Notes under the pieces: generated by a model | The model's input: only the letters and a program-made list of their open reading frames with translations | Database searches by the model: none | Told to the model about the DNA's origin: nothing | Made by a program: the position numbers and the translations under genes | Shown here: positions 17,398 to 56,527 of the stretch, in pieces | Position numbering within the stretch: position 1 is the stretch's first letter | Layout: every line of letters begins with the position of its first letter | Sequence record: NC_061442.1 | Length of the DNA stretch: 64,000 nucleotides | Reading direction: 5' to 3' (one strand)

Positions 17398-18135
17398 TTA
17401 CATGCGAAGTTCGGCAGCAGTGCGCTCGCCTTTCTTGGCGGCAGCGGCAATCTCAGCGTCAGTAGCATCCTTAGTGGCAAGGAGCTTGATGACGTTTTTG
17501 ATTGATCGCAGTTCGCCCAACTGTATTTGGACTTTCTTGACCTTTTTGAGATGATCACCAACGAAGGTCATCAGCCAGCCTTTCTGCTGCATGACAACAG
17601 CCACTTCCAGTTTCTTATACTGGAAGGAGAACTGCTTACCAGAAGCATATAAGAACTTACCAGTACCAGCCACAGGCTCAACAGCACGAATGAACTCAGG
17701 CGCATAGTCCTGTGCGTTTTGACTACGCAAGGAAGAGAACGCAGGAGAGAACGTAGTTGTGGTCGCTACAGCTTTACTTGCGCGTACGGGCTTCCCCAAG
17801 GTAGCATTCGCAGCTTCAGGTTTAACCTTGATGGCACGAAGCGCGTTGATGGTGGCCACCAGCGTCTTCGCCTTATACAGGTTCTTGATTGCAGTCACAG
17901 CGCTCTTGCCCGCAGCTTTCTTAGCAAAGGCCGTAGTGGCGTCAGTGTCTTTCAGAATGTCGAGAATGATTTCGAGCTTGGATGTGTCCAGCTCTTTGAT
18001 CTTCGTCAACTCGTCGATACGCTTGATCAACACTTTGGCATTCTTGCCAAAGAGGATATCTGCGTTGGCTACTTGAGCTTTGGTGGCCGCAGAGATAGAC
18101 ACAACTGCACCACTATTCATCGTCATGTTATACAT
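17398..18135 (-). CDS. Basic Lys/Ala-rich protein with VVSISA leader; probable internal head protein
   Basis: 245 aa, SD AAGGAA; leader motif shared with other ORFs. Confidence 0.55.
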   Translation of the reverse strand: MYNMTMNSGAVVSISAATKAQVANADILFGKNAKVLIKRIDELTKIKELDTSKLEIILDILKDTDATTAFAKKAAGKSAVTAIKNLYKAKTLVATINALRAIKVKPEAANATLGKPVRASKAVATTTTFSPAFSSLRSQNAQDYAPEFIRAVEPVAGTGKFLYASGKQFSFQYKKLEVAVVMQQKGWLMTFVGDHLKKVKKVQIQLGELRSIKNVIKLLATKDATDAEIAAAAKKGERTAAELRM

Positions 18136-18144
18136 CGTAGTTCC

Positions 18145-18711
18145 TTAGCGTTTCTTGGTCCAGTTGGAGTTCTGTTTGCCTTGCTGCTGATTGTTCTGCA
18201 CAGGCTGCTGGGCGTTTTCCGTTTCTTCTTCTGTCTCAACGTCATCTTCTTCCTCGTCGATGACTGGCTTAGCTTCTGGCACAGGTGCCTGCGTCTGCGT
18301 GTTGAGCGATGTTGCAGTTAGAGGTGCTGCCTGCAACGTATTTACAGCAGCTACGGGTTCCTGCACGGCAACCTTACGCGCTTGAGCAACTTCACCTACT
18401 GCGTGTTCGTGGACCAGATCGACAGTCACGAGCTGACCTTTCTCTTTCAAGATTTCATCAGCTCTTGCTTGGTCCCATTGGTCCCAAAGAATGTCCAGAC
18501 CTTTGTGCATGTAATTCATGCCCTTCGGCAGCTTACCGCGACCGTTGAAAGGTAGGCCGTTCGAAGGAGTGGCTGGCTCAAACTCGTCCATCATCTCCCA
18601 CTTACGTTTCGCTTCAATACACTTCGGTCCCCATACACCGTCACACAAACCATCATAGAGTCCCATCATGGTCATGATCAGCTGGAGCTTTTGGTAGAAC
18701 TTGTTTAGCAT
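18145..18711 (-). CDS. Protein with peptidoglycan-binding-like N-terminus and low-complexity tail
   Basis: GLYDGLCDGVWGPKCIEAKRKWE matches the PG_binding_1 DG.xG..T..A pattern; acidic then Q/N-rich C-terminus. Confidence 0.5.
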   Translation of the reverse strand: MLNKFYQKLQLIMTMMGLYDGLCDGVWGPKCIEAKRKWEMMDEFEPATPSNGLPFNGRGKLPKGMNYMHKGLDILWDQWDQARADEILKEKGQLVTVDLVHEHAVGEVAQARKVAVQEPVAAVNTLQAAPLTATSLNTQTQAPVPEAKPVIDEEEDDVETEEETENAQQPVQNNQQQGKQNSNWTKKR

Positions 18712-18728
18712 TGTCGTTCTCCTAAGAG

Positions 18729-18747
18729 AAAGGGGCCGAAGCCCCTT
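18729..18747 (-). terminator. Intrinsic terminator
   Basis: AAGGGGC-UUCG-GCCCCUUU. Confidence 0.8.
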
Positions 18748-18754: not shown

Positions 18755-21700
18755 TTACACTGCCTTGTTTTTGGTAGTGGTGAGTTTCAGACGGTCAAGC
18801 GCCGTCGTCACTTTCTTGATGTTCGTGATATTGTAACCAGCTTTCACGATCTTGTTGATACGTGCTTTAGCGCCAGCGACATTCTTCACGAAACCAATCC
18901 ACATGCCAGGTGAGGAGTCGAAAGTACCAAACTTACGAGTGTTTGGAATCTTCGTACCGATGAAGCGTTTCATCTGCGGGTTTGTGTTCAGGTCGAACAT
19001 GATGCGCAGACGATCTTCCATCACCATAGGGTATGCCTTGACGTGTTTCTTATCAGAGGCTGCCTTGTGACGAATCAGGAAGAACTGCTTCAACTGCTCT
19101 TGAGCTTTCAACGCCAGTTTGATATTGAAGCCCATACGCGGCGTAGACTCGTCGAAGAAGTCCAGCACGAACTCCAAGCGCTTCTCAGAAGGCTTGTCGA
19201 ACACCAGTTTCTTCTTAACCTCTATGAAGTCGAGCATCTTCTCGAAGTCTGCATAGTAGGCACAGTCGTAATACACGTAGTCACCAAACTCCACGAAGTC
19301 GAATGCTTTGAGGGCTTTCGCATCAGGGTCGGTGGCGTTCGCGTAAATAGCCACGAAGCCGTTGTATACGGTAGGAGTCAATTCAAGCTCCATGTCCGCA
19401 CCAGTTGCGTCTTCAACAGCGGCAGCAACAGGTTTCTTACGACGGGTTGTGTTATCCAGCGCAGGCAGATCAGCAGGCTTACGACGACGAACACGACCAG
19501 CAGCCTCAGCAACACCTTCGTTGATTGGCTTACCTTCTGCCTTGTTCTCGGTACGTTTCTTGGCCCGAGCGGTCTTACGCGCTACTGCTACAACCTTCTT
19601 CTCTGTCTCAACCGTATCGGCAGTCTCAGTCTCGTCCTGAATGGTGTCTTCAACTTCAACACGATTCGCTTCGGCTGTAGCACGTTTGCGATCTTTCTCA
19701 TTCGCCCACGGCTTACGAGTCTCGAAGAACTTCTTGAGATCAGACTTATCAACTTTCGTTGCGATGTGAACCTTAGACGCAGGGAAGCTGACAGTCTCGC
19801 CTGTACCAGCCAGACGCACACGCACGGTACTGATTGGACTATCTGCCCGGAGTTTACCGTCAACAGTACGCACAGTCACAGACACTACAACACCATTGCC
19901 GTATTCAGTCACGACAGGTGCACGGGCCAGAGAGTCTTTCAGGCCTTCGCCGCTTGTGAAGTTACGGTTACGCGCCCAGTCAAGCAGACGCTCAAGGCCC
20001 CAGCCGTAGCGGTCAGGAATCTTCTGGTTAGCAACAAACGGAGTCTGCTCCATAACACGGAAGTCGTTCAGAGCAGGCGTGGACGGCAGTGCTTGCATTG
20101 CTGCAATCGTCGTCTTACGCATCTCTTGGAACTCCTGAGACTCGATATCGTTCAGCTCGCGTTTCGCAATGAAGTAATCTGCGAAGTCCGCCATTGTGTT
20201 GTTATCAATCAGAAGCTTGGCGCTCATTTTGATTGGTTCCAACTTGAACTGATCGAGTGCTTCGTAACGCTGGTTGCCCTTCTCGTCGAAGCGCGTTTTC
20301 TCCAGTGTCTTCCACATCAGGCGAGCGACCTTACCAACTTCAAGGGTCTTGTTCGTCATCACCCAGTCGATGAACACAACTTCACGGGCCATGTCGCCTG
20401 GCTTACCGTTCTCGTCGAGTTTTGCAGCAGCAACATCAGGACGGAAGATACGCGCAGTAGACTGGTCGTAAGTACCCGGTGACCACGGCGTATCGCAGCG
20501 GATGATACGACTACCCATCTGCATGTTGTGGCCTTCGGAGATTGCCTGTTCGTTCGCAATCAGAATCTGGACATTGTTGTCCGTTTTGAATGCGTCGAGG
20601 TTAGCGTCTTTGTTTTGCCCCAGCTTACCAACTTCACCGTGATACACTACAGCGACTTTCTTGTAGTTCTCAGGCAGAGCGTTGTAGATAGCGTTTGCGG
20701 AACGGACATAGCGCGTGAAGACAATCAGTTTACCCTGCACCTCTGGTTTCCAGTAGTCTGGATCATCTGGTGGAGGCGTCATTGAAGGCGGCAGCGCTTG
20801 ACGCTTGAACTCTTCGGACTGCTTACGTGCCAGATACTTCTGACCGTTGTAGACAGCAATGTCCAGTTCACGAGGAGTAACGCCTGGCTTCCAGTCGAAG
20901 ATCTGCTGTTCACCAACCATCTGGTCACGCTCAGGCTGCACTTCGAAGTGCTTCTTGATGCGGTCGATGATCGTCATGACTTTAGCAGAGGTGAAGCTGG
21001 TAACGCCAGCGGCTTCAAACGTCATACGTGCAACGTCATCACCCATTGGGTCAGTCAACATCATTTCCATACGCTGGAAGTACATGTTCAGATCGGCGTT
21101 ACCTGCAAGCAGCGCACCCAGGTCATCGCCTTCTTCGATATCGTCTTCGTCAATGTCAGAAGCGGCATCGTTATCACCACCAGCATCTTCGTCGTCGTCA
21201 TCGTTGGAGGCAGAGGCTTTGCGCTTCGCAGCGTTAGCAGCTTCCTGCAATTTCTCCAGCACCTGCTCATACATCGCGCTGTACACTTCCAGGTGTAGGC
21301 CCGAGTTAGGAACAGATGGGTCATCGATCTCAACCTGAATGAAGGTATCAATCGGGTTAGGCAGCATGAATGCCCAGTGCTTACGCTTGAACGAGATGAA
21401 CGCAGTGTGGTTCGCCATACGAGAGTGAGCACGACGAATCATTTCGATATCGTCCTTCGCACCGTCGTAAGCCACGTCAAGGTTATCACCAAACATAGCT
21501 GGTGTCATCAACGCAGCCTGACCTACGATATCACGCACACGGTCTGTTACCAGAGTACCTGTAGCGATACGAGCATAGCGAACGGACGGAGCTGTGAACA
21601 CTGCTTTGGTGTTGAAGTGCACCTGAGAACCAGCCTGACCACCAGAGAAGTTCTTCACCTTGTGCGATTCATCGAGCAGCACATAGCTGAAACGGAAGCG

Positions 21701-24604
21701 GTTGACGAACTCCACAGCACCACGAATACGAACGCGCACACCGCCAATGTCAACGTTGAACGTACCAGTCTGCAAGAAGCTCAAGCCCACGATGTAGATC
21801 GTGTTGCGAGGAGCCTGCTGGATAACGTCATACATGCGGTCTTCGCCCCACGTGTTAACAGTGTCAGCAGTAATAGGTACTGCGTTCCAGCCGTCAACGA
21901 TTTTGTGGAGGTCATCACACCAGTTAGCCACTAGGTTAGATGGGCAGATGATCAGAGGACGAATTGTTTCTTCACCCAGGTCATCCAGCTCTTTAATCAG
22001 AGCAGCAACGTCAGACAGACCGATGATAGTCTTACCACCGCCAGGCGCGATAAAGATAGTCGCAAAGCGAGGACGGCGACGCAGAGTTTTATGCGCTTCA
22101 ACCTGATGTGGAAGTAACGCAGCACCATCACGCAAACCAGGAATACGGATATCGTCAATCGTGATACCGCTGTCCGGTTTCAGTTTCTCAATCTCCACCT
22201 CAGCCTGTTCGAAGTATTCGAGAGACTTAGGAATCACTTCGCTGTACAGCGCGGCGAATGGCAGAATGATCTGTTGCAGACGGTCAGAACCAGGAGCCGT
22301 GTCGCTTTCAATCAGAGAGCTAAACAGCTTCTTACGATCAGACTTAGTGATCGCATTGGCCATTTCACGGTAGACTGCACCACCAAAGTAGTTGTTCAGT
22401 CGTGCCATGTCAGCCAGCTTCGACGTTTCACCCATCACGAAGTAGTGAGTGTGTGACGGCAGCGATTCTGTTGCAGCCTGAATGCTTCCCATCTCGGTGA
22501 GAGAGGTAGAGATCAGGTTAGAGCCACGCAGACCAGCAGCATCGTTCAGTACGCGAATCATGATACGCATCACGGTCAGTGCTGGCCGCTCTTCCGCAAT
22601 CTCAGGAATCGAGAAGTCGTTCTCAATCAGGTTCTGATACAGGTTCTGGTCCATTGGACTTTCTGCCAATGAAGCGTTCTCCGCATCCATACCGATTGCA
22701 ACACGCGCGTTCTGAATCAGCGTCTTCATGTCAGGAACTTGTTTGTTCTTGAGCATGAACTCATACGTCTGACAAGTAGACGCAATGATCTGAATCAGTT
22801 CGTGAAGGTTTGAACCTTCGGTGCTGTTGTACTTGATAGTGCTATCAGAGACAGCTTCTACCAAACGACCTGCACCAGACTCAGCTTTTGCCGCTTCAAT
22901 CATCATGTCGTTAGACGTGCGATAAGCAGGCATCATGCCGGAGGATTGGTTCTTATGGATGTTACCGATCACGTTAGACACAGAGCGATAGTTCGGTGCT
23001 TCACCAGGCTCTGCAAAGTCATAGCCCAGTGAGTCAGCAACGTCCAGAGCTGTAGGAGATTTCATACCAACGGTACGAGTCTCTTTAACATCAAGGCCGC
23101 CACCATTCGAAGTGTTGACGATCAGCGCGAAGTCTGGATCGATACCAATACACACGTTGCTGAAACGGTTCAGGGTTTTAGCTTTAGCCTGAATATCGCG
23201 GTCGAAGTCCAGATTGCCGTTCTGAATAGCGAACATGCTGGTACGCAGTGTATCGTGGTCAGTAGACAGCGGCACACCTTTCTCAAACAGGCTCTCCAGC
23301 ACATCGTTCAGCGTAGTCTCGTAGTTACGAACCATCTCAACGTCAATATCTTCACGGCGAGGCAGCACAGCGAGAGTACCGTTCGGCATGATCGTCAGAC
23401 CGTTGTCGTCAGCAACAACGTCATTAACTACATAGCCAAACTTCTCACGGAGTTTCTTCAACTCAGGCAGAGTGGTGGCTGAGGTAACGTAGCGTGGGAT
23501 ACGCGCAGCACGAGTGATACCAGTACGAGTAGAGCCAGCAACACGGAAGTAGTAGCTCGCCCAGCCCTGGAACCAACGATACAGACACATGGTCTGCGTG
23601 TCAGCACCCTGACTGATGTACTCCACCAGCTCTTTTTCGAAGTTAACGATCAACCCAGCTTCAACACGAACGTCGATAGCGAGAGCAACATCGTTAAAGT
23701 CAACAGGCGTGTCGTGACTGATCTTCATCGCCTGGAGCTTGCGCTCAATCATTGCCTTACCGGGCACAGGACGAATGCCAATAGTCATGAAGTCGCCCAG
23801 CGCTTCTGCGGCAGCCTTGTCCAGATTACGGAACAAGTCAATGTCGATGCCGTTCATCGCAGGGTGAATAGAGCGCAGTGCTGCGTTATAAACAGACCAG
23901 TCTTTATCGAGAGGTATACGTACCATCTTCGTATCAAAGACGTTGCCGTTGGAGCGCTCTACGCCGAAGATATCTTTGTACAGAGTCTTCGCCACACGAA
24001 TCGCAGACTGTGCGATCTCTGAGCTGTATGTACGCAGATTGGCGCTTTCGAAGCTCGCATCATTATCAACGCGAGGACGGTCGCTACCCTGATTGTTCAG
24101 GACGTTAAAGTTACCGTGCGCTGCCAGTTGGCTGGTAGGAACAGGCGTACCAGACATGACAATATCTTTACCGCCCGGATATCGCGTACTGTTTTCAATG
24201 ATAGCGCCCGACGAGGCAGACAGATGCTCGGCGAGTGAGGTCTTAATCTCACGGCTCAGCTTATCTCCGTTCAGCGTCATGTTAATGCGCATGGTCGCCA
24301 GATCGATGTTCGCCTTGATACGCTTGGTAAACTCCTCAGGAGCAACCTCCAGCATATCTTCGAACTCTGCACCGTTGACGACGATGTAGCTGATCAAGTC
24401 AAAGGCTGCGTATAAGCGAGCGACGGTTGACGCGGTGAATACTGCAAGGGTTTCGTAGTTACGACGAGACTTCCCTGTAGCATACATCTTCGACATTTTA
24501 CCATCGAACGCGGGCGGCAACGCACGGATAGCAAGCGCCTGGTTAAAGGTGTCGGCGATCTGCTGGGTTGCGGTTGCTGAGGTACTGATCATTTGATTCA
24601 TCAT
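18755..24604 (-). CDS. Large SNF2-family (SF2) ATPase/helicase, 1949 aa
   Basis: LLPHQVEA, APGGGKT, PLIICPSNLVANW, LLDESHKVKN, IATGT, LIVFTRY, SEGHNMQ, WSPGTYDQSTARIFR; long uncharacterised N- and C-terminal regions. Confidence 0.88.
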   Translation of the reverse strand: MMNQMISTSATATQQIADTFNQALAIRALPPAFDGKMSKMYATGKSRRNYETLAVFTASTVARLYAAFDLISYIVVNGAEFEDMLEVAPEEFTKRIKANIDLATMRINMTLNGDKLSREIKTSLAEHLSASSGAIIENSTRYPGGKDIVMSGTPVPTSQLAAHGNFNVLNNQGSDRPRVDNDASFESANLRTYSSEIAQSAIRVAKTLYKDIFGVERSNGNVFDTKMVRIPLDKDWSVYNAALRSIHPAMNGIDIDLFRNLDKAAAEALGDFMTIGIRPVPGKAMIERKLQAMKISHDTPVDFNDVALAIDVRVEAGLIVNFEKELVEYISQGADTQTMCLYRWFQGWASYYFRVAGSTRTGITRAARIPRYVTSATTLPELKKLREKFGYVVNDVVADDNGLTIMPNGTLAVLPRREDIDVEMVRNYETTLNDVLESLFEKGVPLSTDHDTLRTSMFAIQNGNLDFDRDIQAKAKTLNRFSNVCIGIDPDFALIVNTSNGGGLDVKETRTVGMKSPTALDVADSLGYDFAEPGEAPNYRSVSNVIGNIHKNQSSGMMPAYRTSNDMMIEAAKAESGAGRLVEAVSDSTIKYNSTEGSNLHELIQIIASTCQTYEFMLKNKQVPDMKTLIQNARVAIGMDAENASLAESPMDQNLYQNLIENDFSIPEIAEERPALTVMRIMIRVLNDAAGLRGSNLISTSLTEMGSIQAATESLPSHTHYFVMGETSKLADMARLNNYFGGAVYREMANAITKSDRKKLFSSLIESDTAPGSDRLQQIILPFAALYSEVIPKSLEYFEQAEVEIEKLKPDSGITIDDIRIPGLRDGAALLPHQVEAHKTLRRRPRFATIFIAPGGGKTIIGLSDVAALIKELDDLGEETIRPLIICPSNLVANWCDDLHKIVDGWNAVPITADTVNTWGEDRMYDVIQQAPRNTIYIVGLSFLQTGTFNVDIGGVRVRIRGAVEFVNRFRFSYVLLDESHKVKNFSGGQAGSQVHFNTKAVFTAPSVRYARIATGTLVTDRVRDIVGQAALMTPAMFGDNLDVAYDGAKDDIEMIRRAHSRMANHTAFISFKRKHWAFMLPNPIDTFIQVEIDDPSVPNSGLHLEVYSAMYEQVLEKLQEAANAAKRKASASNDDDDEDAGGDNDAASDIDEDDIEEGDDLGALLAGNADLNMYFQRMEMMLTDPMGDDVARMTFEAAGVTSFTSAKVMTIIDRIKKHFEVQPERDQMVGEQQIFDWKPGVTPRELDIAVYNGQKYLARKQSEEFKRQALPPSMTPPPDDPDYWKPEVQGKLIVFTRYVRSANAIYNALPENYKKVAVVYHGEVGKLGQNKDANLDAFKTDNNVQILIANEQAISEGHNMQMGSRIIRCDTPWSPGTYDQSTARIFRPDVAAAKLDENGKPGDMAREVVFIDWVMTNKTLEVGKVARLMWKTLEKTRFDEKGNQRYEALDQFKLEPIKMSAKLLIDNNTMADFADYFIAKRELNDIESQEFQEMRKTTIAAMQALPSTPALNDFRVMEQTPFVANQKIPDRYGWGLERLLDWARNRNFTSGEGLKDSLARAPVVTEYGNGVVVSVTVRTVDGKLRADSPISTVRVRLAGTGETVSFPASKVHIATKVDKSDLKKFFETRKPWANEKDRKRATAEANRVEVEDTIQDETETADTVETEKKVVAVARKTARAKKRTENKAEGKPINEGVAEAAGRVRRRKPADLPALDNTTRRKKPVAAAVEDATGADMELELTPTVYNGFVAIYANATDPDAKALKAFDFVEFGDYVYYDCAYYADFEKMLDFIEVKKKLVFDKPSEKRLEFVLDFFDESTPRMGFNIKLALKAQEQLKQFFLIRHKAASDKKHVKAYPMVMEDRLRIMFDLNTNPQMKRFIGTKIPNTRKFGTFDSSPGMWIGFVKNVAGAKARINKIVKAGYNITNIKKVTTALDRLKLTTTKNKAV

Positions 24605-25098
24605 TCACCCAGTTTACTATAGTTGTCGATTACAGACGTCCACACCGCAGGTACAGGCAGGCGTCGGTCCGCAGCGATATCAGAAAGCACGATGGCCAGC
24701 GCATAAGCACGAAGTGGGTTCAATCCCTCAAACTTATCACGGGTGAACACCGAAGTCAGTTGCTCATTGGTCAACGTCTGATACTGCGCTCTGTATTCAG
24801 TCAGGTAGGTGCGATACTTACCGTCGTCAACAGGCGTGGTGTCAGGAGTGTTCTGCACATAGAGCAGCGCTTTCCCCAACGCATCCATAATCAGCAGCAA
24901 GTCTGCTTGATCGTACGGCGTGATATCAGGAACGTTAGAAGTGCCGAGCAGTTCAATGACTGACTCAGGCAATTGGATAGGCTCTTGGGCCTCAGATATG
25001 GACTCAATAATCCCCTGCGCAGCACCCGCATAGCTCTTTCCGCTTAACGAGATACTTGACAGTAAGGAATGGAGCCGCGTATTTACGTCGTGCGTCAC
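24601..25098 (-). CDS. Hypothetical protein with SISLSG leader
   Basis: Likely GTG start at 25098 (SD AGGAG): MTHDVNTRLHSLLSSISLSGK. Confidence 0.6.
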   Translation of the reverse strand: MTHDVNTRLHSLLSSISLSGKSYAGAAQGIIESISEAQEPIQLPESVIELLGTSNVPDITPYDQADLLLIMDALGKALLYVQNTPDTTPVDDGKYRTYLTEYRAQYQTLTNEQLTSVFTRDKFEGLNPLRAYALAIVLSDIAADRRLPVPAVWTSVIDNYSKLGE

Positions 25099-26253: not shown

Positions 26254-26278
26254 GTGCCTATTCTCCTAAATACAATGA

Positions 26279-26287: not shown

Positions 26288-26289
26288 AC

Positions 26290-27096
26290 TTACGCAGAGG
26301 CGGAGAAGATCTGTACCGTCTTATCCAGTCCAGCTTGATACGATTGTTCCACGTCTTTCGCAGCACGTCGAATGATGTTCTGCGTAGAGTTCTGGGCAGC
26401 AGAGATAAGCTCAACAGGTAGGTTCTTTTTGTTCCAAGCATTAATCTGGTGGAACACGCCAACAAGAATCGTACCAGCAGACTCGGCGAATGGTCCAAGT
26501 ACCTCTGCGTTAAGAATCTCACCCAACTGGCCAACGTCACGCAGCGCACGTAGGTCTGCAATGATCTCACGCATCTGGTTATACAGTTGCATAAGCGCAT
26601 AGATATCACGGCTCTGCTTGGACTTTTTATACTGCGCCTCACAGATACGAGCCATGTCCTGACACTGCACGAACATGGTCATGTACTCGGCAATCTGCTC
26701 GTTCTCTTGTTTGATGACGTCAGGGATTTCGTCAATGACTTCAAGTAACTGACCTTCAAGAACGGCCACATCAGTGATTCCTTTCTTAGCCTTGTCCTTC
26801 TTGGACTTCTTCTTGATTGTATCGGCAGCGTTTTCTTTCTTCTTTTTCTTCTTCGGCTTTTCGTCGATAGAAGATATTGCCTTTTGGGTATTGGCGATAT
26901 CTGCGTAAAGTTCTTCTGGGTTAAGCACACCAGGCATGATATCTTTCGAAGGGTCTTTCTTCTTTTTCTTTTTGACTTTCACGCCTTTGCTAACTGTCTT
27001 AGCTTTAACAGCGGTAGTCTTAGCTTTCACTTTCGCTTTGCCTTTCTTTGTAGGCTGTGCGTAAGAGCCAATGTCATCCAAGCTTATGGCCGCCAT
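26290..27096 (-). CDS. Hypothetical protein: poly-Lys N-terminal half and helical C-terminal half
   Basis: 268 aa, SD GAGGA; K6 runs. Confidence 0.65.
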   Translation of the reverse strand: MAAISLDDIGSYAQPTKKGKAKVKAKTTAVKAKTVSKGVKVKKKKKKDPSKDIMPGVLNPEELYADIANTQKAISSIDEKPKKKKKKENAADTIKKKSKKDKAKKGITDVAVLEGQLLEVIDEIPDVIKQENEQIAEYMTMFVQCQDMARICEAQYKKSKQSRDIYALMQLYNQMREIIADLRALRDVGQLGEILNAEVLGPFAESAGTILVGVFHQINAWNKKNLPVELISAAQNSTQNIIRRAAKDVEQSYQAGLDKTVQIFSASA

Positions 27097-27155: not shown

Positions 27156-27956
27156 TTAGAAGCTGTGACCTTTGATGATACCAGCAATCTTGCTGTAGTA
27201 GTCCGGGCTGTAGCGGAACACTTGAGCATAGTAGCTCAACAGCTTAGGTACGTCAACGCCAGCAGCGGCAGACACGCTATCAACGGCAGGGAACTGGTTC
27301 GGGTCCAGTTCGTCGCCAGACAGAACAGCAACCATAGACATGGAGCTAATCTGTTCTTCGTTGCCTTCCTGATCAACCACCAGCATGGTATTGTCATCGG
27401 TAACGTTAGCAGCAACGAAACCAATCTTCAACGCGCCTGAGTTAGACACGAAGCTGACCATATCACCGCCTACAGCCGCCGCCAGAATCGCTTCATTGCG
27501 CAGGATTGCCTGAGCCAGTTCAGGACGCTGGGCCGAGAAGTTAACAGTCGAGGCACCGCTGACAGAACGAATCATGTCAATCAGTTCAGCGTTGTCATTG
27601 GCGGAGCTGTCACGCACCAGAACGTCTTCACCGGATTCAGATTTACGCACATGCCACATGCGCTCGCTCTGGTCCATGTACATGTTCTTAGACAGTGCCT
27701 GGAACTGATCGCCCATCTGAGACACAGGGATGATATCCTGCATACGGCTCATGATAGTACGCACGAAGCTGGTGGTCTTACCGCCTTCGATCAGAGTGGA
27801 TGCACCGTCGACTGGAAGATATTCGCGGTTGCAGGATGCACTTACGATTGCGCCGAAGTTATCAGCGATGTTCTCACCCTGTGCGTGGGTTAACTGTACG
27901 ATGGCAACGCTCTGAGTGTCGTTGACCTGATCGATCTGTTTAATGAAAGCCTTCAT
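27156..27956 (-). CDS. Probable head/virion structural protein
   Basis: Likely start ATG 27956 (SD AGGAG at proper spacing); late-type motif upstream; internal RSVSGA and DSVSAA. Confidence 0.5.
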   Translation of the reverse strand: MKAFIKQIDQVNDTQSVAIVQLTHAQGENIADNFGAIVSASCNREYLPVDGASTLIEGGKTTSFVRTIMSRMQDIIPVSQMGDQFQALSKNMYMDQSERMWHVRKSESGEDVLVRDSSANDNAELIDMIRSVSGASTVNFSAQRPELAQAILRNEAILAAAVGGDMVSFVSNSGALKIGFVAANVTDDNTMLVVDQEGNEEQISSMSMVAVLSGDELDPNQFPAVDSVSAAAGVDVPKLLSYYAQVFRYSPDYYSKIAGIIKGHSF

Positions 27957-36575: not shown

Positions 36576-37085
36576 TTACTCCTTAATCATTTTGACGCGC
36601 ATATGATCGAAAATGCCGAACGTAGGCACGTCATGGTTTTGACCTTCATTACCTTTGATGGAGTCGTAGCCAGCGAGGTTCAGTATCTTACTGATCTCGG
36701 TGTACTCGTCCCACCACATGTAGACACGTTTGTGCTTACTGTCTGGAATGAGTTTGTTCAACTTATCTAGGCGTGCTACTAAGGTCAGTGCTTCGTCGCG
36801 GCCAACACGCTTATCCTGAAACGCTTCCATGATAAGTTTCTTAACCCGACTATAGATCTCAGCGAACTTGACCTCTGTCCAGAGAGAACGAAAGTTCAGG
36901 CTGGCATAGCGTCCAGGGTCCGCATGAAATTTGTAGAGGCGCCCATCCTCCGCATACAATTCAGCATACGCACGATCGGGAGTTACCCACGTCATGTGTT
37001 GCTTCTTCGCATGTTCATCTGACCAGTCTTCTGCAAGACCTCGATAGTAGATTGTGGGCGCACTCAGGCTGACGAAGACCTGCAA
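36576..37085 (-). CDS. ADP-ribosyltransferase-fold protein with VFVSLSA leader
   Basis: YYRG, WVTPDRAYAELYA..GRLYKF, C-terminal AGYDSIKGNEG...FGIFD; TTG start abutting the upstream TAA. Confidence 0.55.
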   Translation of the reverse strand: MQVFVSLSAPTIYYRGLAEDWSDEHAKKQHMTWVTPDRAYAELYAEDGRLYKFHADPGRYASLNFRSLWTEVKFAEIYSRVKKLIMEAFQDKRVGRDEALTLVARLDKLNKLIPDSKHKRVYMWWDEYTEISKILNLAGYDSIKGNEGQNHDVPTFGIFDHMRVKMIKE

Positions 37086-38033
37086 TTACTTGTCCAGACG
37101 CTCGAACTTAACGCCAGCATCGCTCTGGGTAAAGCGAATGACGCCAGGGATTTCGAAGCCATCGCGGTTCTTCTGCACAGGAATCTTTTTGTCTTCCAGG
37201 TGCATACGCAGTTCGGTCATGACGATGTTGTTCTTACCGATTGCTTTGCCTTTCAGGCCTTTCGCATTGTAAGTCACATCACCAGATTTCGTCTTCGTAT
37301 TGAACTTGATGCCGACAGTATCGAGCAGGTCAGGCAACGCTTTATGGACTTTAGCAGACAGTTCGCCTGGGTCCATCTTCGCAGCTTTGGCGCGGGCAGG
37401 AGTCTTAGCGCCCGCCACGATGCCTTTGTTGCGTTTGAAAGGAGCTTTGGCGTTTTTACGATCGGTATCGGTCACGCGAACTTTAGGCTTAGCGGCCTTA
37501 GTACCTACCGCATCGAACGCAGCTTCTTTCAAGAACTTAGGCTTGAACGCACCACGTTTACCAGTTACACCAAACTCAGTCAGCTTGGCACTACGGATTG
37601 CTTTCAGTGCCTTTTCTGCGCCTACGCCAGTTTTGATATCAGCCGCAGACAGAGGCAGATTCAAGCCGCCAAGACCATGTGCCTTAGCTACTTTGTTTGC
37701 TTCACGCAATTCCGCTTTAGCAGTTTTAAGGTCAGCAGCAGCTTTCGCCTTCTCTGCTTTGCGTGTAGCCATAAGCTTGGTGCGCTTGTCACCACGAGGA
37801 AGTTGATTAGCTTTGGTTGCAGCAGTGTTTGCTTTGATGGAAGCGGTGATGCCAGACACAGCAGCAGTCTTAGCTTTCTTCAAGTGACCAACAACAGCCT
37901 GCAACTCACCTTTCTTGGCAGAGTTAACCACCAGCGTAGAAGCGCCGCCAACTTTAGCGATCTTGTACGCAGGTTTCTTAGCGGCAGATTCAGAAGCTAC
38001 GGCTTCCGCGAGGTTGATTTTAATCAGAGACAT
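37086..38033 (-). CDS. Basic Lys/Ala-rich probable internal head protein (paralog A)
   Basis: 315 aa; MSLIKINLAEAVASESA leader; KRNKGIVAGA motif; SD AAGGAA. Confidence 0.6.
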   Translation of the reverse strand: MSLIKINLAEAVASESAAKKPAYKIAKVGGASTLVVNSAKKGELQAVVGHLKKAKTAAVSGITASIKANTAATKANQLPRGDKRTKLMATRKAEKAKAAADLKTAKAELREANKVAKAHGLGGLNLPLSAADIKTGVGAEKALKAIRSAKLTEFGVTGKRGAFKPKFLKEAAFDAVGTKAAKPKVRVTDTDRKNAKAPFKRNKGIVAGAKTPARAKAAKMDPGELSAKVHKALPDLLDTVGIKFNTKTKSGDVTYNAKGLKGKAIGKNNIVMTELRMHLEDKKIPVQKNRDGFEIPGVIRFTQSDAGVKFERLDK

Positions 38034-38086: not shown

Positions 38087-38965
38087 TTATCGTGCGCGGA
38101 TAGCGTCGTCACGTTCACGCTCGGCCATTTTCATTTTCTGTGTAGCAGCCTCAAGACGTTTACCAGTAGCACCGTCGCGAATGATGTTATCGTACTTGGT
38201 AACCTGCTTGTCCAGTCGGGTGATAGCTCGCTCACGTGCGGCAGGAGACATTTCGCTATAGTCAACACCGGCAAGGGCAGCAGCACGTTTTGCTTTCGCC
38301 TCTTTAGCTTTTGCAGGAGAGTACGCGCCGGCCACAATGCCTTTGTTGCGTTTGGCCGCGACGGGCTTAGGCTTGTCGCTAGGCTTAGCACCTGGCGTAG
38401 GTTTCTTAGCAGCAGAGGATGCGCCGATCTTATCGAACTTATCACCCGTTGCGAAACGAGGCTTGAGCAATGATGGGCTACGATTCGTACCGCTCGCTTT
38501 CACCCAGAAGGTATCTGCTTTAGCTTTACCGATTTTGCTGATTGTGTAATCAGGCTGAGTCATCGTGATATAAGACGGACGAATCGGAGTGGACAGAACT
38601 TTCAGGCCCGCTTTAGCAAGAGAGGCAACAGCAGACGTAGCCAGCTTCTTAGCAGCAGTAACATCCTTTTTGATCTTGGCGTTGTTAGCTTTGATCTTAG
38701 CGCTGATAGGAGCTTTCTTTTCTGAGTCTCGCGTTGACTTCAACTTGAGTTTCAGCTTCGCAGTAGTCTGACCGAGTTTAGCCGCAGCAACACCTAAGAC
38801 CTTCGCCTGCTTCAATGAAGTAGCAGCCTTAGCGACAACAGGCTTATACTTAGAGTTGATTACGATCATAGGACCGTTGGACGATTGAACGATATGATAC
38901 GACGATTTCTTCACAGCAGACTCAGACAGCAAAGAATCCGCAATATTGATTCTGATAACAGTCAT
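38087..38965 (-). CDS. Basic Lys/Ala-rich probable internal head protein (paralog B)
   Basis: 292 aa; MTVIRINIADSLLSESA leader; KRNKGIVAGA motif. Confidence 0.6.
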   Translation of the reverse strand: MTVIRINIADSLLSESAVKKSSYHIVQSSNGPMIVINSKYKPVVAKAATSLKQAKVLGVAAAKLGQTTAKLKLKLKSTRDSEKKAPISAKIKANNAKIKKDVTAAKKLATSAVASLAKAGLKVLSTPIRPSYITMTQPDYTISKIGKAKADTFWVKASGTNRSPSLLKPRFATGDKFDKIGASSAAKKPTPGAKPSDKPKPVAAKRNKGIVAGAYSPAKAKEAKAKRAAALAGVDYSEMSPAARERAITRLDKQVTKYDNIIRDGATGKRLEAATQKMKMAERERDDAIRAR

Positions 38966-38974: not shown

Positions 38975-39580
38975 TTACACCAGCGCTCGGCTTGGGATAT
39001 CGAAGTTTTTACCAGCGGAATAATCACCCAATGCGCGATACAGTGAATCACGTAACATTTGCTCGATGATATCAGAGTTATGCGCAGATGCGTCTTTGAA
39101 AGCAACCTCAATCGAATCAGTTCTTGGATTCACTACTGCATAGCGCAGCGGGCAAATAGTTTGTGCTTCACACCAAGCGTCGATTCGCGGCTGCAATTCA
39201 GGCGTAATGGGAATGCGGAAATCAGCGAGAGCAAAGATCACGCTTTGAATTGGTGGTGGTGCAGACTGCGACATGTACTTGCCGTTAGGACTTAGGCGTT
39301 CCATAGCAGTCGAGGCTTCAAAGATCGATTGGTAACCTTCACCGATTGTGGTAATGTTACTGAGCTTGAAGCTATGCGTCGTCAGGCCTTTGCGAATGAG
39401 TTTGGCGACTTTCAGATCGTAGTCACCTGAATCATCTTGCGCAAAACAGACGAAAGCGTAGAAGGAAAATCCAGAGTCTTCGCGCAGCAGACGATGGTCC
39501 AGCACACGGAACCCCACGACGCTTTGCAGCGCCTGTGAGGTGATCTGAATTCCCTTAGATAAGGCGACAAAGATTTGCAT
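38975..39580 (-). CDS. Hypothetical protein with MQIFVALSK leader
   Basis: 201 aa, coupled to the upstream stop. Confidence 0.6.
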   Translation of the reverse strand: MQIFVALSKGIQITSQALQSVVGFRVLDHRLLREDSGFSFYAFVCFAQDDSGDYDLKVAKLIRKGLTTHSFKLSNITTIGEGYQSIFEASTAMERLSPNGKYMSQSAPPPIQSVIFALADFRIPITPELQPRIDAWCEAQTICPLRYAVVNPRTDSIEVAFKDASAHNSDIIEQMLRDSLYRALGDYSAGKNFDIPSRALV

Positions 39581-39918
39581 TAACGCAGAGTCTTCAACGC
39601 CTGTTTAGCTTTCGCCAAATCAGTGAAGTATTTGGCATCGTCATCGAACTCTGGTTCCATGCGGATTTCGATGCCAGATACGTTGAAGCCAATATCTTCA
39701 TCTTCATCTTTGGTGACCATGCCGAAACGAGCTACGCCTTCTTTATAGCTAATGAAACGGAAGTCGATGATATCTTCCGGACCGCTCAGGTCAGAAGGCA
39801 TACCATCATCCAGCAGATCGAAGAACTCTTTCTTCGTCAGCTTAGTGAACACACCGGTCATAGCGTTGGCCGAAGTAGACGATACAGATTCGTCCAGATT
39901 CAGTTTGATAAGACTCAT
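39580..39918 (-). CDS. Acidic hypothetical protein with SVSSTSA leader
   Basis: 112 aa; MSLIKLNLDESVSSTSA. Confidence 0.6.
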   Translation of the reverse strand: MSLIKLNLDESVSSTSANAMTGVFTKLTKKEFFDLLDDGMPSDLSGPEDIIDFRFISYKEGVARFGMVTKDEDEDIGFNVSGIEIRMEPEFDDDAKYFTDLAKAKQALKTLR

Positions 39919-45995: not shown

Positions 45996-46267
45996 GCGAA
46001 CACTTTACGCACCCCATTATCCAGATAGTGGTCTGCATAGAAAGGTCCGTTTTCATTTTCAATACCAATACGGCGGCAGAGCTGACGACGCAAGCGCTTA
46101 GGCCACACCATCTCGTCATCCAGCAGATGAATAACCGTAGGTAGCGCTTCGAGTTGAGTCATTGTCAGGTCACGAATCTTATCGTCAATCTTACAAAGTT
46201 CAGCGTAGTCCTGTTCAGGTGTGGGTACAGGACGTTTGGGCTTAGATAGATCTACGGTGATTTCCAT
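45983..46267 (-). CDS. Hypothetical protein
   Basis: 94 aa, SD GGAGG. Confidence 0.65.
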   Translation of the reverse strand: MEITVDLSKPKRPVPTPEQDYAELCKIDDKIRDLTMTQLEALPTVIHLLDDEMVWPKRLRRQLCRRIGIENENGPFYADHYLDNGVRKVFAGAA

Positions 46268-46713
46268 CAGTACCTCCTAGGCTTCTTGATTTTCTTAATC
46301 GTGGACTTAGGACGTTTGATTGCCCGCAGTGCCTTACGTGCTTCGACAATCTTCTTGGACAACTCAGAGCGCTGGGCCTTAACAGCATCAGTGTCCTGCT
46401 CGGTGCCTTTAAGTTTCTCAAGGCGATTCCACTCTTTGACCAAACGATCAACGACGTTAGCACGAGACACACGTTGCTGGTTAACGCGCACAATGTCCTG
46501 TTGCTTCTTCACGGAGTCACGAGTGTTATTCACTTCGTCCCGTGCAGACTTCACGCCTTTAGTATCACCTTCGGACTGTTTGTCGTTCAGCTTCTTTCGT
46601 GCAACCTGCGAACGTCGCTGGGCGCCCTTGAGATCATCTTTCGAGTTCTCAAGGCTGACCTTTGTGTCTTCAAGTGGGCTGGTTCGCGCACTCAAACTGA
46701 TAAGTATTTTCAT
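46267..46713 (-). CDS. Basic coiled-coil protein with MKILISLSA leader
   Basis: Likely start ATG 46713 (SD GAGG); the 46776 start would run through a terminator. Confidence 0.6.
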   Translation of the reverse strand: MKILISLSARTSPLEDTKVSLENSKDDLKGAQRRSQVARKKLNDKQSEGDTKGVKSARDEVNNTRDSVKKQQDIVRVNQQRVSRANVVDRLVKEWNRLEKLKGTEQDTDAVKAQRSELSKKIVEARKALRAIKRPKSTIKKIKKPRRY

Positions 46714-46844: not shown

Positions 46845-47381
46845 TCATGCGGATTGAAGTTGAATGATTTCTTCGTCTTCGATATCCGCGCCAGACCACG
46901 AACGAATCACGGATGCGTTACCACGATTACCTGTCAGCATCATCTTGAGAGATGGCTTGGCATCGCGCTCTGCGTAATAGTCGATCAGAGCTTTATCTGA
47001 ACCGAACCATAAAAGGGAGTGACCGCCCTTAGGGCAGATCAAGAACTGAGTAGGACGTTGAGGTACGCTCAATGTCAGATAGAAGTCACCTGCGCCAGTA
47101 GGTCCCATCATAGGCATAGGCTTCATGATCTGTTGGAAGTCTTTAGCATCTCTAAGACGCATATCACCCAACAACCAAACAGCACCTTCTTCACCTTCAC
47201 GCACGGCGCTCAACGTGCCTTTACGAGAAGTGATAGATCCGAATACATCTTGATCGAATCGAGCCAGCCCAAAGATAAGTGATGCGAGTTTCTTCAAATC
47301 AGGAGTGGTGCATGGACTGTCAATTTTAGCCATGCCCTCAGACCCGATTGTAATCTTCGATAACGAAACAAAGATTTTCAT
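46845..47381 (-). CDS. Hypothetical protein with MKIFVSLSK leader
   Basis: 178 aa; late-type motif upstream. Confidence 0.6.
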   Translation of the reverse strand: MKIFVSLSKITIGSEGMAKIDSPCTTPDLKKLASLIFGLARFDQDVFGSITSRKGTLSAVREGEEGAVWLLGDMRLRDAKDFQQIMKPMPMMGPTGAGDFYLTLSVPQRPTQFLICPKGGHSLLWFGSDKALIDYYAERDAKPSLKMMLTGNRGNASVIRSWSGADIEDEEIIQLQSA

Positions 47382-50517: not shown

Positions 50518-51090
50518 TTAGGCCCTCAAATCAACCAGTATCGAAGCACTCAGGTCTCGGAGCATATCTCGCCCAAGAGAAGTGTACATCGTCTGCGCTA
50601 TAACTATTCGTTCAAGGAAAAGGCGAGAACTGTTAACGTCATGGCCTGTCTTCTGCTGAACGAAGTCGATGATTGATGACGCAGGCTGAATTAGGAATGT
50701 GAGTATCTCGGCGTCGTGGAGCACGTTGCCCATAGCCGTCACAGGACGCATCTCTGTTTCCTGATCGAGAATGTATGAGATGACTCGGTCTTCATTGCCT
50801 ATGTTAGGGAATAGCTTAAAGAACTTGCGTACCGACTTGACTGTCGCCATGAAGTCATAGTCTGGGTTGGTGGGCATACGCAAGAAGAGGGAGGCGAGCA
50901 ACAAGTTTATTTCTAACTGTGGACCTTGTTCAATGTTCAACATTGCATGTGAAGTCAGCACAACATTCAACGAGAAGTCACGAGTGTAGAGCGGGTGAGA
51001 GGTCGCTGTCTGGTCAAAATAGTCAAGGGCGGAACGCAACCCCTGACGTATTAACAGGTGCTCTGCTTTAATGCGAGTCAGGCGATGCAC
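50518..51090 (-). CDS. Hypothetical protein, possibly inactive HD-domain fold
   Basis: Helix pattern HPLY..FSLNV...LLLASLFLRM...VISYILD...VLHDAEIL tracks HD domains but lacks the HD residues. Confidence 0.4.
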   Translation of the reverse strand: MHRLTRIKAEHLLIRQGLRSALDYFDQTATSHPLYTRDFSLNVVLTSHAMLNIEQGPQLEINLLLASLFLRMPTNPDYDFMATVKSVRKFFKLFPNIGNEDRVISYILDQETEMRPVTAMGNVLHDAEILTFLIQPASSIIDFVQQKTGHDVNSSRLFLERIVIAQTMYTSLGRDMLRDLSASILVDLRA

Positions 51091-53854: not shown

Positions 53855-53861
53855 CGCGTTC

Positions 53862-55541
53862 TCACTGGAGTTTGCTGGCTATTTTCAGATACTCACTATT
53901 TACAGTTTCTACATCAGTGAAACCCTTCTTAGCGGTCACATCGCGCCTCAATCCCCCCATACGCAAACCATTCTCCCAGAGTCGCATGAACAACAAGCTA
54001 TTAAGAGTAGGTTGCATGAAGGGTTTTTCTTTCAACGCAACGTCACCTGTATACTCCGTCAAGAGTATCGCACCATCAAACTCGGCACTGCACCATTCAG
54101 CCTCCGCCAAGATTTTTAACAGGTTATGATTTTCCATGCCCTGTATCAAATGACTAAGCACTGTATATTGATCCCGCTTAAAGCGGTGTGCAGGGACCTG
54201 ATGTGAGCAGCCAGAATCATTCTTAAAATAGTAGGCACCGTTGCGGGAGTATGATGCGTCCCTAATTCGTTCGCAAAGTTCACTAACGACCTCAGACGCA
54301 GGCTTGAACATAGCCTTCCACTTATCCCAGATAAAGCCAACATGCTGGTGCATTTCTTTCTCGGTCATCCGAAGTTTCTTAACCGCATTGACCACTTTCG
54401 TGTCATTCAACAATTGTCGATAGATATCTGTCGCCATCGGCTTTTGTTGTTCGTTGTCCGTACGATTTTCGAAAGACTGTTTAAAATATTTCTGATTACT
54501 CCACCCGCTGTATATCCCCCCGTAGTTAAGGGTCTTCGCTGTACTTCGCGTTATCTTCAACTGACGTGCGACTTTATCATGATTGAGATTCTCCAGCTCA
54601 GGACAATCCAAACCGTGCGTTGCCATAAGGTCCAATAGCAGAACCATTTGGGCATTAGGCATATCGAAGTTACGTCCATACGAATGATCGAAACATAGCA
54701 GCTTTACCAGCTTAGGTAAAGCTGCGGTTGTGCCGAACAAACGCGAGCCGACGTGGTTCATCGTATACTCGTCGTAAAACTCAACCAGTCTATCATTAGG
54801 ATTATCGTTAACCAAACGGAACCCGAAACGACAAATCTTTTTCAAGAATGAGTTAAGACGTAGGTGCAGTTTCTTCCGTCGATTAGTCTTGGTGTTGTGC
54901 ATGATATCCAAGAATCGATCGAGGTAGAAACGATACGGACGTTGATTAGCCTGCGCCTTGTTTATCAAGTCGATAACCTCACCGCAATATGCCCTACGAT
55001 TCTCGAAGTTATGAGGACGTATGAACGAGCGGGATTTTATCTCAGAGCAGAACGAAGACTCGACCAAATCTTCCTCGTTCTTATACAACGCTCGCCTGCG
55101 AGCAGGCTTCATGAGATTATACATAGGTTCATCGAGCGTTATCAGCTCACAGAAAATGTCCGTGAACGTTTTGTTGAGCGTATATTTTCTGGCGATTCCT
55201 TTTATGTAGTCGTAACGAGTATGATCGACCTTTCGGCTCAACCATGAAGCCACGGAGTATTCTTTGTGGTACACCATGGCATATCGCATCTTTTCGTGCT
55301 GACGCATGTAGGTGTGAGTCACTACCGTCTCGTTATAAACGTTTCGGCGCTCCATGACATTGGATTTATCGAGAAGGTGCATGAAAAACCACGCCAAACT
55401 CTCGTAAAACTTATCAGATTTTGCTTTAGGTGGCTTTGGGCAAGAATAGATCGTATCCCAGAAGAACTTATGGGCCGATTTCTGCACCGTGAACGCCCAT
55501 CCAGGCATCACGGCCTTCTTGCGGTACACAGGCTTTGCCAT
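53862..55541 (-). CDS. Minimal family-A-fold nucleotide polymerase (TV-Pol-like), no exonuclease domain
   Basis: Likely start ATG 55541 (SD GAGG). GSRLF, motif A FDMPNAQMVLL, motif B RSTAKTLNYGGIY, motif C EFDGAIL in correct order. Confidence 0.65.
   Translation of the reverse strand: MAKPVYRKKAVMPGWAFTVQKSAHKFFWDTIYSCPKPPKAKSDKFYESLAWFFMHLLDKSNVMERRNVYNETVVTHTYMRQHEKMRYAMVYHKEYSVASWLSRKVDHTRYDYIKGIARKYTLNKTFTDIFCELITLDEPMYNLMKPARRRALYKNEEDLVESSFCSEIKSRSFIRPHNFENRRAYCGEVIDLINKAQANQRPYRFYLDRFLDIMHNTKTNRRKKLHLRLNSFLKKICRFGFRLVNDNPNDRLVEFYDEYTMNHVGSRLFGTTAALPKLVKLLCFDHSYGRNFDMPNAQMVLLLDLMATHGLDCPELENLNHDKVARQLKITRSTAKTLNYGGIYSGWSNQKYFKQSFENRTDNEQQKPMATDIYRQLLNDTKVVNAVKKLRMTEKEMHQHVGFIWDKWKAMFKPASEVVSELCERIRDASYSRNGAYYFKNDSGCSHQVPAHRFKRDQYTVLSHLIQGMENHNLLKILAEAEWCSAEFDGAILLTEYTGDVALKEKPFMQPTLNSLLFMRLWENGLRMGGLRRDVTAKKGFTDVETVNSEYLKIASKLQ
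53897..53905 (-). promoter_or_regulatory. Phage promoter motif CTGTAAATA
   Basis: Inside the upstream gene end, 43 nt upstream of the TnpB-like start. Confidence 0.65.
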
Positions 55542-55870
55542 TTGGACCTCAAAACATACGTTTCGTGGCTGATCTTTACAGAATCCGCTCTTTTCTCGTG
55601 GTACGGAACTCAAATTGCATCATCAGATGGGTAGATAGGATATATCAGCATGTTCATGCAGCATGAGCGCACTATAGTCACAAGAAATCAGTAGCCCGAT
55701 TCCGAATCCCTGCTCCCAGGAGACATATCCCTAAAGTATAACCAGCTAAAAACAGCAAAAAAGCTAAACCGTCTTTAGACTGGTTATTTGGTGTCAATGC
55801 AGAGGATTCTGAATCCTCGTGAGAAGACACGCATACAGGGTGCACCAGGAGCGAATCTGTCGGAAGTCGG
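55542..55870. promoter_or_regulatory. Long intergenic control region / candidate origin
   Basis: Two GATTCNGAATC palindromes (55698, 55805), three phased AGC(T/A)AAA tracts (55744, 55754, 55762), promoter variant CTGTAAAGA at 55573-81. Confidence 0.4.
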
Positions 55871-56527
55871 TTACTTTTTGCGCGAAACGCGCTTACCGAG
55901 TTTTACGCCAATCTGCGTCATAACACGCTTCACAGTCTCTCCATCGTGCTCCTCAATAGCGTTTGCGAGTTTTTCGCCTTGCTCCCGAGAAAGCTCAGGC
56001 ATAATCAATTTCAGCATCTGCGAACGCATTTTTGCCGACTTCGATTTGCCTTTCGATACAGACACGCCCTCATTAGCAGATAACGCACTGCTAATAGCCT
56101 TTTGCACACGACGGTCGCCGAAGATATCGCCGAAGATATCACCGAACAGGTCCTTGAACGACATTCCGCCGCTCATGATATCATCCTTAGTGAAGCGAAC
56201 AGGCTGCCCCAGCGCATTCGTCTTTGTGCTGTGCGTCGATTCAACTTCATTCGTTGTACGCCCACCAGCACGGAAGTTCTCGTCAGGACGTGACGCTTTG
56301 CCTTCTGCGCCCGGCTTTGTGTTGCCGTTACGCAAATCTGGGTCTCCCTCAACAGCCTTATCAGGGTCGAACATGTCGTCCGCTGTTTCGCTCTGGTTTG
56401 GATCGAAAGGAATCTTACCTGTCAGCTTATTCGGGTCCGGCCAGCTATCTGGGATATCAGACGCCGGTTGAGGCTTGTTCGTCATATCGTTCACATCGCC
56501 GCTCAGGCTGATCTTAATGCGAGTCAT
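55871..56527 (-). CDS. Probable virion protein with IKISLSG leader
   Basis: 218 aa, SD AGGAG; disordered P/D-rich N-half, helical C-terminus. Confidence 0.55.
   Translation of the reverse strand: MTRIKISLSGDVNDMTNKPQPASDIPDSWPDPNKLTGKIPFDPNQSETADDMFDPDKAVEGDPDLRNGNTKPGAEGKASRPDENFRAGGRTTNEVESTHSTKTNALGQPVRFTKDDIMSGGMSFKDLFGDIFGDIFGDRRVQKAISSALSANEGVSVSKGKSKSAKMRSQMLKLIMPELSREQGEKLANAIEEHDGETVKRVMTQIGVKLGKRVSRKK

Follow-up and report, generated by a model that had tools for sequence, protein, structure and literature searches.

A serine-based S-x-S leader on unrelated proteins of Erwinia phage pEa_SNUABM_35, most likely a cutting and loading signal for head proteins

Why would a set of proteins with unrelated bodies begin with the same short, serine-based peptide? 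The question is raised by a 64,000-nucleotide stretch of sequence record NC_061442.1 (the whole of which is referred to here as the window), identical (100%) to positions 124,001–188,000 of the 261,719-bp record of Erwinia phage pEa_SNUABM_35, genus Alexandravirus. This phage is a ‘hairy’ jumbo myovirus, grouped with Lu11, PaBG, NCTB, the Dickeya JA and AD1 phages, Erwinia Y3 and Yoloswag in what has been named the ‘Lupandier group’ (PMC7412058). A preliminary description of the window had pointed to an N-terminal S-x-S-[AGK] leader on about 12 of its proteins. The S-x-S tag heads about twenty unrelated proteins and is most likely a cutting and loading signal for proteins packed in the head, because it also marks the expected trimming points of the capsid protein, the portal and the head protease.

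Orthologs were compared across the syntenic 48–49 kb of six other genera, represented by Y3, SNUABM_7, fHe-Yen9-02, Yoloswag, SNUABM_5 and JA29. As the head genes lie outside the window, the remainder of the pEa_SNUABM_35 genome was added to the analysis. Yersinia phage phiR1-37, considered as a further relative, has no homologs of gp181 or gp205 in 50 kb; it is thus unrelated and served as a negative control only. A literature search found no description of the S-x-S motif.

All 12 leader strings of the preliminary description are present at the starts given for them, on the minus strand, and their serines are encoded, as it had noted, by AGC or AGT in some genes and by TCG or TCT in others. 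Its motif stands in part: S-x-S is conserved, but the fourth position is not confined to [AGK], the residue following the second Ser being mostly Ala, with A, K, S, G, M, Q, D, R, F and H all seen. Type A leaders, an 8-residue M-x-[IVL]-x-[IV]-S-L-S at the very N-terminus, are carried by gp189, gp192, gp203, gp204, gp205 and gp216 (window coordinates; CDS, coding sequence):

47355..47381, minus strand: gp205 leader MKIFVSLSK, type A, residues 1–9; CDS 46845–47381
46687..46713, minus strand: gp204 leader MKILISLSA, type A; CDS 46267–46713
46241..46267, minus strand: gp203 leader MEITVDLSK, type A variant (Yoloswag ortholog MEIVISFSA); CDS 45983–46267
39554..39580, minus strand: gp192 leader MQIFVALSK, type A; CDS 38975–39580
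37059..37085, minus strand: gp189 leader (TTG)-QVFVSLSA, type A; CDS 36576–37085, RefSeq start 36995
56498..56527, minus strand: gp216 leader MTRIKISLSG, a looser type A; CDS 55871–56527

The leader of gp205 is present in 19 homologs and in four of the six other genera, and that of gp204 retains M-x-[IVL]-[LV]-[IV]-S-L-S in all six (6/6), the bodies being 44–82% identical. The gp192 string had been listed as an S-x-S leader but actually reads A-L-S; its orthologs begin MKIFVSLAA, MEMYVSLSR, MRISISLSA, MEKVVSLSA, MTQIVVSVSA and MMEILVSISA. Among the orthologs of gp216 (MRVMISLNS, MTKIYVSLNS, MKISISLND, MKLRLSLSR and MKLKINLSE), Asn replaces the second Ser in three genera. The string at 37085 begins with a TTG codon, located directly after the stop codon of gp190, and RefSeq places the start of gp189 30 codons downstream. 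Since the Y3 ortholog has ATG at this place (ATG-MQIFVSLSS) and the differences across the extension are distributed 5/5/13 over the three codon positions, the N-terminal extension of gp189 is real coding sequence.

Type B leaders are longer (17–20 residues) and consist of MSLIKLNL, a spacer and S-[ET]-S-A; they are found on gp190, gp191 and gp193, and in degenerate form on gp171:

37983..38033, minus strand: gp190 leader MSLIKINLAEAVASESA, type B, conserved in 5 genera; CDS 37086–38033
38915..38965, minus strand: leader of the gp190 paralog gp191, MTVIRINIADSLLSESA, type B; CDS 38087–38965
39868..39918, minus strand: gp193 leader MSLIKLNLDESVSSTSA, type B; CDS 39580–39918
18088..18135, minus strand: gp171 leader ending VVSISA, degenerate type B; CDS 17398–18135

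The gp193 orthologs of Y3 and Yen9-02 retain the leader, with SESS at its end. The orthologs of gp171 in six genera carry a full type B leader, MSLIKLN...S-[ETV]-S-A-T-K, of which the pEa_SNUABM_35 copy is a worn version. Short leader variants are found on gp173 and gp181:

24575..24601, minus strand: gp173 leader MNQMISTSA; CDS 18755–24601, 1,948 residues
31520..31564, minus strand: gp181 leader ...NNEVSSISA, residues 1–15; CDS 30275–31564

In gp173, a protein with SNF2-related and Helicase_C domains (Pfam), M-x-I-S-[TM]-S-[AK] is retained across six genera.

A genome-wide scan returned S.S[AGK] within residues 1–20 of 21 proteins, against 9.7 expected. The strict 8-residue type A leader occurs at nine N-termini compared with 0.83 in shuffles (maximum 5 in 2000); outside the window it is found on gp072, gp117 (Nudix), gp130 and gp146, all on the same strand block, and on gp236 on the plus strand. 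Ranking of 400 X.Y patterns by conservation in the first 25 residues of the 55 families with at least three orthologs placed S.S first, with 11 families out of 55, the runner-up having 4. Ortholog identity is similar in the S.S families and in the rest (59.5% versus 58.5%), and the leaders persist in the six other genera although the bodies are just 27–80% identical. By BLASTP the bodies (residue 21 to the end) are unrelated, as had been claimed with one paralog pair excepted; the exceptions are gp190/gp191, and gp130 and gp146, which share a short domain. This N-terminal domain of about 60 residues is related to the KMPT-N/KTSC domain of gp139 (Pfam), the gene of which adjoins that of the protease:

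96419–97090 of the record: gp130, leader-bearing
112270–114132 of the record: gp146, leader-bearing
105016–106152 of the record: gp139

The leader lies outside the protein fold and behaves as a separate module. In the AlphaFold model of gp205 (15 sequences; predicted local distance difference test score (pLDDT) 76, predicted template-modelling score 0.74), residues 1–8 are unstructured (pLDDT below 50) and folded structure sets in at residue 9–10; likewise, the NUDIX domain of gp117 begins at residue 20. The orthologs of gp205 in Yoloswag and SNUABM_5 start at a Met inside S-M-S-G; these two genera have therefore lost the leader from this gene. Between the orthologs of gp204 and gp205 is a variable spot, occupied in other genera by unrelated genes, each of which has the leader at its start. 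Among them are SNUABM_7 gp209, which matches an RNA-polymerase ADP-ribosylase PHROG (E value 3e-13), and JA29 gp192, with a Pfam ART-PolyVal domain starting at residue 33 (E value 2e-27); Y3 gp206 and JA29 gp190 are further examples. The leader is also present on larger accessory proteins of 595–725 residues in Yoloswag, SNUABM_5 and JA29. Searches of Pfam, PHROGs, NCBIfam and PDB sequences with the leader proteins gave no function beyond SNF2 for gp173 and NUDIX for gp117, and a structure search with the gp205 model yielded its own orthologs alone from BFVD and no match from the PDB.

The same motif recurs in the core proteins of the head. Residues 64–69 of the major capsid protein gp136 read V-H-S-T-S-A, with S-x-S at residues 66–68:

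100985–102085 of the record, outside the window: gp136, major capsid protein

In an alignment of 120 capsid homologs, S-x-S is found at reference residues 60–80 in 32 of 32 close-clade proteins, compared with a background of 1.4% for windows of equal size taken from the mature part of the protein. The motif sits in an otherwise variable linker at the propeptide boundary, directly after a conserved G-x-[LIV]-V, and [SA]-[LMP]-S-A occupies the equivalent position in the distant capsid proteins of PaBG type. From these alignments we infer that the S-x-S linker is the maturation site of the capsid protein: a cut there is predicted to remove 18.0–18.2% of the mass in pEa_SNUABM_35 and 18.8–19.0% in PaBG, the capsid protein of which, according to the PaBG authors, sheds about 20% of its mass during maturation. 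A downstream L-x-E in the capsid protein is not conserved in the homolog alignment. Within the propeptide, residues ~30–41 form a second strongly conserved block, L-A-L-S-S-S-T-G-E-I-N-A, common even to PaBG, which might be cut as well or might contact the scaffold.

In the portal, hydrophobic-x-S-x-S-[AS]-G stands directly ahead of the conserved core (homologs of 45–100% identity), and the head-module proteins gp134 and gp135 each retain a conserved site. The N-terminus of the protease gp140, described below, retains S-x-S-F even in homologs of only about 43% identity. Further sites are found within proteins or at their C-terminus, some of them in addition to an N-terminal leader:

39263–39271, minus strand: second, internal gp192 site, S104-Q-S106, conserved in 7/7
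31385–31393, minus strand: second gp181 site, residues 58–60; both gp181 S-x-S sites conserved in 7/7
24994..25002, minus strand: gp174 site I-E-S-I-S, S-x-S at residues 33–35, conserved in 7/7; CDS 24601–25098
27156..27956, minus strand: gp178, 266 residues, with six conserved S-x-S sites at 39, 106, 131, 171, 205 and 227
26293..26307, minus strand: I-F-S-A-S-A at the C-terminus of gp177, last residues, conserved in 5/5 aligned orthologs; CDS 26290–27096

The list of about a dozen sites thus changes at both ends: the SLSG of gp174 (residues 17–20), which had been counted, is not conserved in orthologs and is a chance match, its place being taken by the site at 33–35, while gp203, the six sites of gp178 and the internal site of gp192 had been overlooked. 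Located in the connector-proximal structural block, gp178 is the ortholog of PaBG gp197, and its six-site pattern is as expected of a candidate scaffold or core protein chopped into pieces. Outside the window, gp138 (676 residues; record 102907–104937) is annotated as ‘ATPase’. Its sequence has acidic repeats of DFDSESS and contains S-x-S more than 20 times, and the protein may be a substrate resembling a scaffold rather than an ATPase.

The enzyme proposed to act on these sites is encoded in the head module:

6152–6931 of the head-module stretch, outside the window: gp140, gp21-like head protease

A member of PHROG 18299 (phrog_18299, ‘head maturation protease’), gp140 has no Pfam match and no PDB sequence match. 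Its AlphaFold model (pLDDT 80; N-terminal residues 1–19 disordered) has T4 gp21 as its sole match in the PDB (5jbl, three chains; probability 0.89–0.95, the next match reaching 0.02). Residues H124, S181 and E236, a candidate catalytic triad as judged by sequence conservation, are invariant among 38 homologs, with a T4-like spacing of 57 between His and Ser. Between S181 and E236 is a Cys/His-rich insertion with C191, C194, C206 and H208 invariant, suggestive of a zinc-binding motif that T4 gp21 lacks.

Characterised gp21-type proteases all cut after Glu (PMC5694885, PMC10052503). An invariant Glu at P1 was not found here: many sites read STS, SIS, SLS, SQS or SVS, and at S-E-S sites the Glu is exchanged for T, I, V, H or K in orthologs. 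Both Ser of S-x-S are constant but the residue between them can be E, T, I, L, V, Q, H or K, so that Glu cannot be required, and Glu-type cleavage beside the motif was rejected for the same lack of conservation. Signal peptides of the Sec, Tat or lipoprotein kind were rejected, type A having eight residues in total and type B lacking a hydrophobic core. Cleavage of a Prp/L27-type extension was rejected as well: neither of the peptidase genes tested has a Prp-like Pfam match, and it is S-x-S, and no aromatic residues, that closes the leaders.

Taken together, we consider it fairly probable that the leaders steer diverse proteins into the prohead, where the gp21-like protease would remove them at S-x-S, as it would trim the capsid protein, the portal, itself and core proteins. 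S-x-S, usually after one or two hydrophobic residues and mostly before Ala, would be the recognition site of gp140, with the cut favoured after the second Ser (P3 Ser or Ala, P1 Ser, P1′ mostly Ala). The type A and type B peptides would work like the capsid targeting sequence (CTS) of T4, drawing unrelated proteins into the assembling prohead, and the protease would trim them off inside it. Predicted cargo comprises the 215-kDa SNF2 protein gp173, small proteins of unknown fold and the Nudix enzyme, as well as ADP-ribosyltransferases in relatives. The mature cargo would remain in the head and presumably be delivered along with the DNA. Virion data from PaBG are consistent with this: band 1 of its structural proteome is gp202, a 221-kDa ‘RuvB helicase-like’ protein, which is the ortholog of gp173 (29.6% identity over 1,979 residues, in the same gene neighbourhood) and has S-L-S-A at residues 9–12. 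The preliminary suggestion of a capsid-targeting or prohead-protease signal is supported by every in silico test run, with cleavage and packaging predicted from sequence. A more specific proposal, that the P1 preference of this gp21-fold protease has switched from Glu to Ser and that the 8-residue M-x-[IVL]-x-[IV]-S-L-S alone is a portable load-then-cut tag, is put forward tentatively, as something rather less than an even chance.

Several points weigh against this account. The fold match between gp140 and gp21 is weak (E value 0.014–0.03, template-modelling score 0.35–0.49), and Ser at P1 would be unprecedented among gp21-type proteases. In some protease homologs just one or two residues precede S-x-S, which is short for a recognition site, and in some orthologs of the leader proteins S-L-N or A-L-S replaces the motif. 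Documented virion location is limited to the PaBG ortholog of gp173. Moreover, gp130 bears the leader yet lies between tail-tube genes, and neither gp117 nor gp236 is an obvious head protein.

The alternative that survives best, although we regard it as unlikely, keeps S-x-S as the prohead protease site and denies the 8-residue leader a targeting role: the proteins would get into the head through other contacts, and the leader would merely be trimmed, or would hold enzymes inactive until they are in the head. As this alternative would have it, hydrophobic-x-S-x-S is enough at the sites of the capsid protein, portal and gp178, and leaderless orthologs of gp205 exist. Type A, however, also conserves M-x-[IVL]-x-[IV], beyond the needs of an internal site, and the whole leader has been acquired by unrelated accessory genes, both of which favour targeting.

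Somewhat less probable again is a tag unrelated to the head. It might act as a degron, be gripped by a chaperone or ATPase, mark substrates of gp211, or serve as an O-glycosylation sequon for the glycosyltransferase whose gene lies beside that of the protease. Several carriers look non-structural (Nudix gp117, gp236), the head module does contain a glycosyltransferase gene, and gp211, within the block, carries a peptidase annotation. Against these stand the placement of the motif precisely at the expected maturation boundaries of capsid protein, portal and protease, and the finding of the gp173 ortholog in virions. The case of gp211 was considered separately:

51090–52064, minus strand: gp211, annotated ‘peptidase’ (PHROG 17197), the activity being an annotation only

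Nothing was found in favour of a processing role for gp211: HExxH is absent, and the protein matches no family of Pfam or NCBIfam and no PDB sequence.

Very improbable is an origin in chance, in serine-rich composition or in a hidden paralog family with a similar first β-strand. The gp190/gp191 paralogs, the short domain common to gp130 and gp146 and the merely about twofold enrichment of the loose motif are what it can draw on, but the numbers for the strict leader (9 versus 0.83 in shuffles), the first rank of S.S among 400 patterns, the unrelated bodies, the disorder of the modelled leader and its loss in two genera all oppose it. A nucleotide signal for translation or RNA in the 5′ coding sequence, suggested by the constant position of type A at the start codon, is hardly credible given that the serines are coded by both AGY and TCN and that the motif is also internal in the capsid protein, portal, gp178 and fused reading frames.

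These fused open reading frames (ORFs) join gp192-like and gp190-like proteins in a single product of 545–646 residues in three of the genera compared (coordinates in the syntenic stretches):

25815–27488, fHe-Yen9-02: fused gp192/gp190-like ORF
25783–27723, SNUABM_5: fused gp192/gp190-like ORF
26414–28051, Yoloswag: fused gp192/gp190-like ORF

In each, the type B leader including its Met is internal (near residue 220), and a ribosome-binding site of AGGA-like sequence persists upstream of the Met; the products may be polyproteins or the outcome of a retained internal start. The first half of the type B leader also resembles the beginnings of three tail-fibre proteins encoded outside the window, which are without S-x-S-A:

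63159–63980 of the record: gp099, starting MSLTRINP...
62680–63156 of the record: gp098, starting MPIIRINP...
69656–70288 of the record: gp104, starting MGLIKVS...

This half of the leader may be a docking element in common with the tail fibres.

Two further genes of the window encode leaderless proteins:

31738–32418, minus strand: gp182, histone-H1-like
35128–35493, minus strand: gp186, with a Tlde1 domain (PF10908, E value 2e-15)

The Lys/Ala-rich basic protein gp182 was rejected as a substrate, as it has no S-x-S in any genus; the syntenic PaBG gp191, of similar composition, is a virion protein found in several gel bands. Tlde1, the domain found in gp186, is the fold seen in L,D-transpeptidase effectors of type VI secretion.

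The closest parallel is the CTS and gp21 of T4, the internal-protein genes of which are a diverse set with only the CTS in common (PMC3012670). Both systems place short N-terminal propeptides (10–20 residues in T4) on diverse proteins and end them at the head protease site (PMC3012670, PMC5694885); in both, cargo genes vary and the capsid protein is trimmed at the motif of the leader, which here is a prediction. They differ in that leader and cargo have no sequence similarity between the two, and in the site itself, S-x-S here compared with hydrophobic-x-Glu in T4. Type A is, moreover, only eight residues long, portal and protease N-terminus also bear the site, and the evidence here is computed only.

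In the jumbo-phage heads of phiKZ (protease gp175), 201phi2-1 and SPN3US (gp245), many ejection proteins are processed and propeptides can have multiple sites (PMC10052503, PMC5694885). The proteases of the phiKZ/SPN3US type prefer a small P3 residue (A in SPN3US, S/A/G in phiKZ) and a hydrophobic P4 (PMC10052503, PMC5694885), and their logo, with Val at P4 and Ala or Ser at P3, resembles the S-x-S site (hydrophobic P4, Ser or Ala at P3) except for the Ser at P1. Cutting there is always after Glu, whereas here the two Ser are constant. The clades differ too, phiKZ, 201phi2-1 and SPN3US being nucleus-forming phages, in contrast to the ‘hairy’ Lu11/PaBG/Y3 myoviruses.

Herpesvirus assemblin, a serine protease in the capsid-maturation fold family of gp21, recognizes a site with the small residues Ala and Ser. 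In that site Ala precedes Ser, the reverse of the order here, and the relationship is compared through the gp21 fold match only. Encapsulin cargo-loading peptides are likewise short and bring unrelated cargo into an HK97-fold shell, although they are usually C-terminal and uncleaved; their likeness to the leaders is one of analogy only. Domains of the ART-PolyVal and RNA-polymerase ADP-ribosylase-like kinds have been described as injected with phage DNA (PMC7824862). Such domains, as in polyvalent proteins and T4 Alt-type ADP-ribosyltransferases, are found among the leader-bearing genes of the relatives, here as small single-domain proteins with a leader and not as parts of one giant protein.

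On the best reading, the phage has a T4-CTS-like propeptide system with Ser in place of Glu specificity, cleavage and packaging being predictions. This would widen the specificity of capsid-maturation proteases, so far reported as Glu only, and the 8-residue tag would be a compact means of loading foreign proteins into large phage heads, a use to which the T4 CTS has already been put. At least one gene start, that of gp189, is corrected. For the Lu11/PaBG/Y3/Alexandra jumbo phages, in which about 70% of genes have no known function, the leaders would provide a first way into the study of head maturation and of the packaged or ejected proteome. If the proposal is true, the tag marks an injected proteome of 15–20 enzymes, among them an SNF2 motor, ADP-ribosyltransferases and a Nudix hydrolase, that would be readable from any genome of the clade, and candidate anti-host effectors could be annotated from sequence alone.

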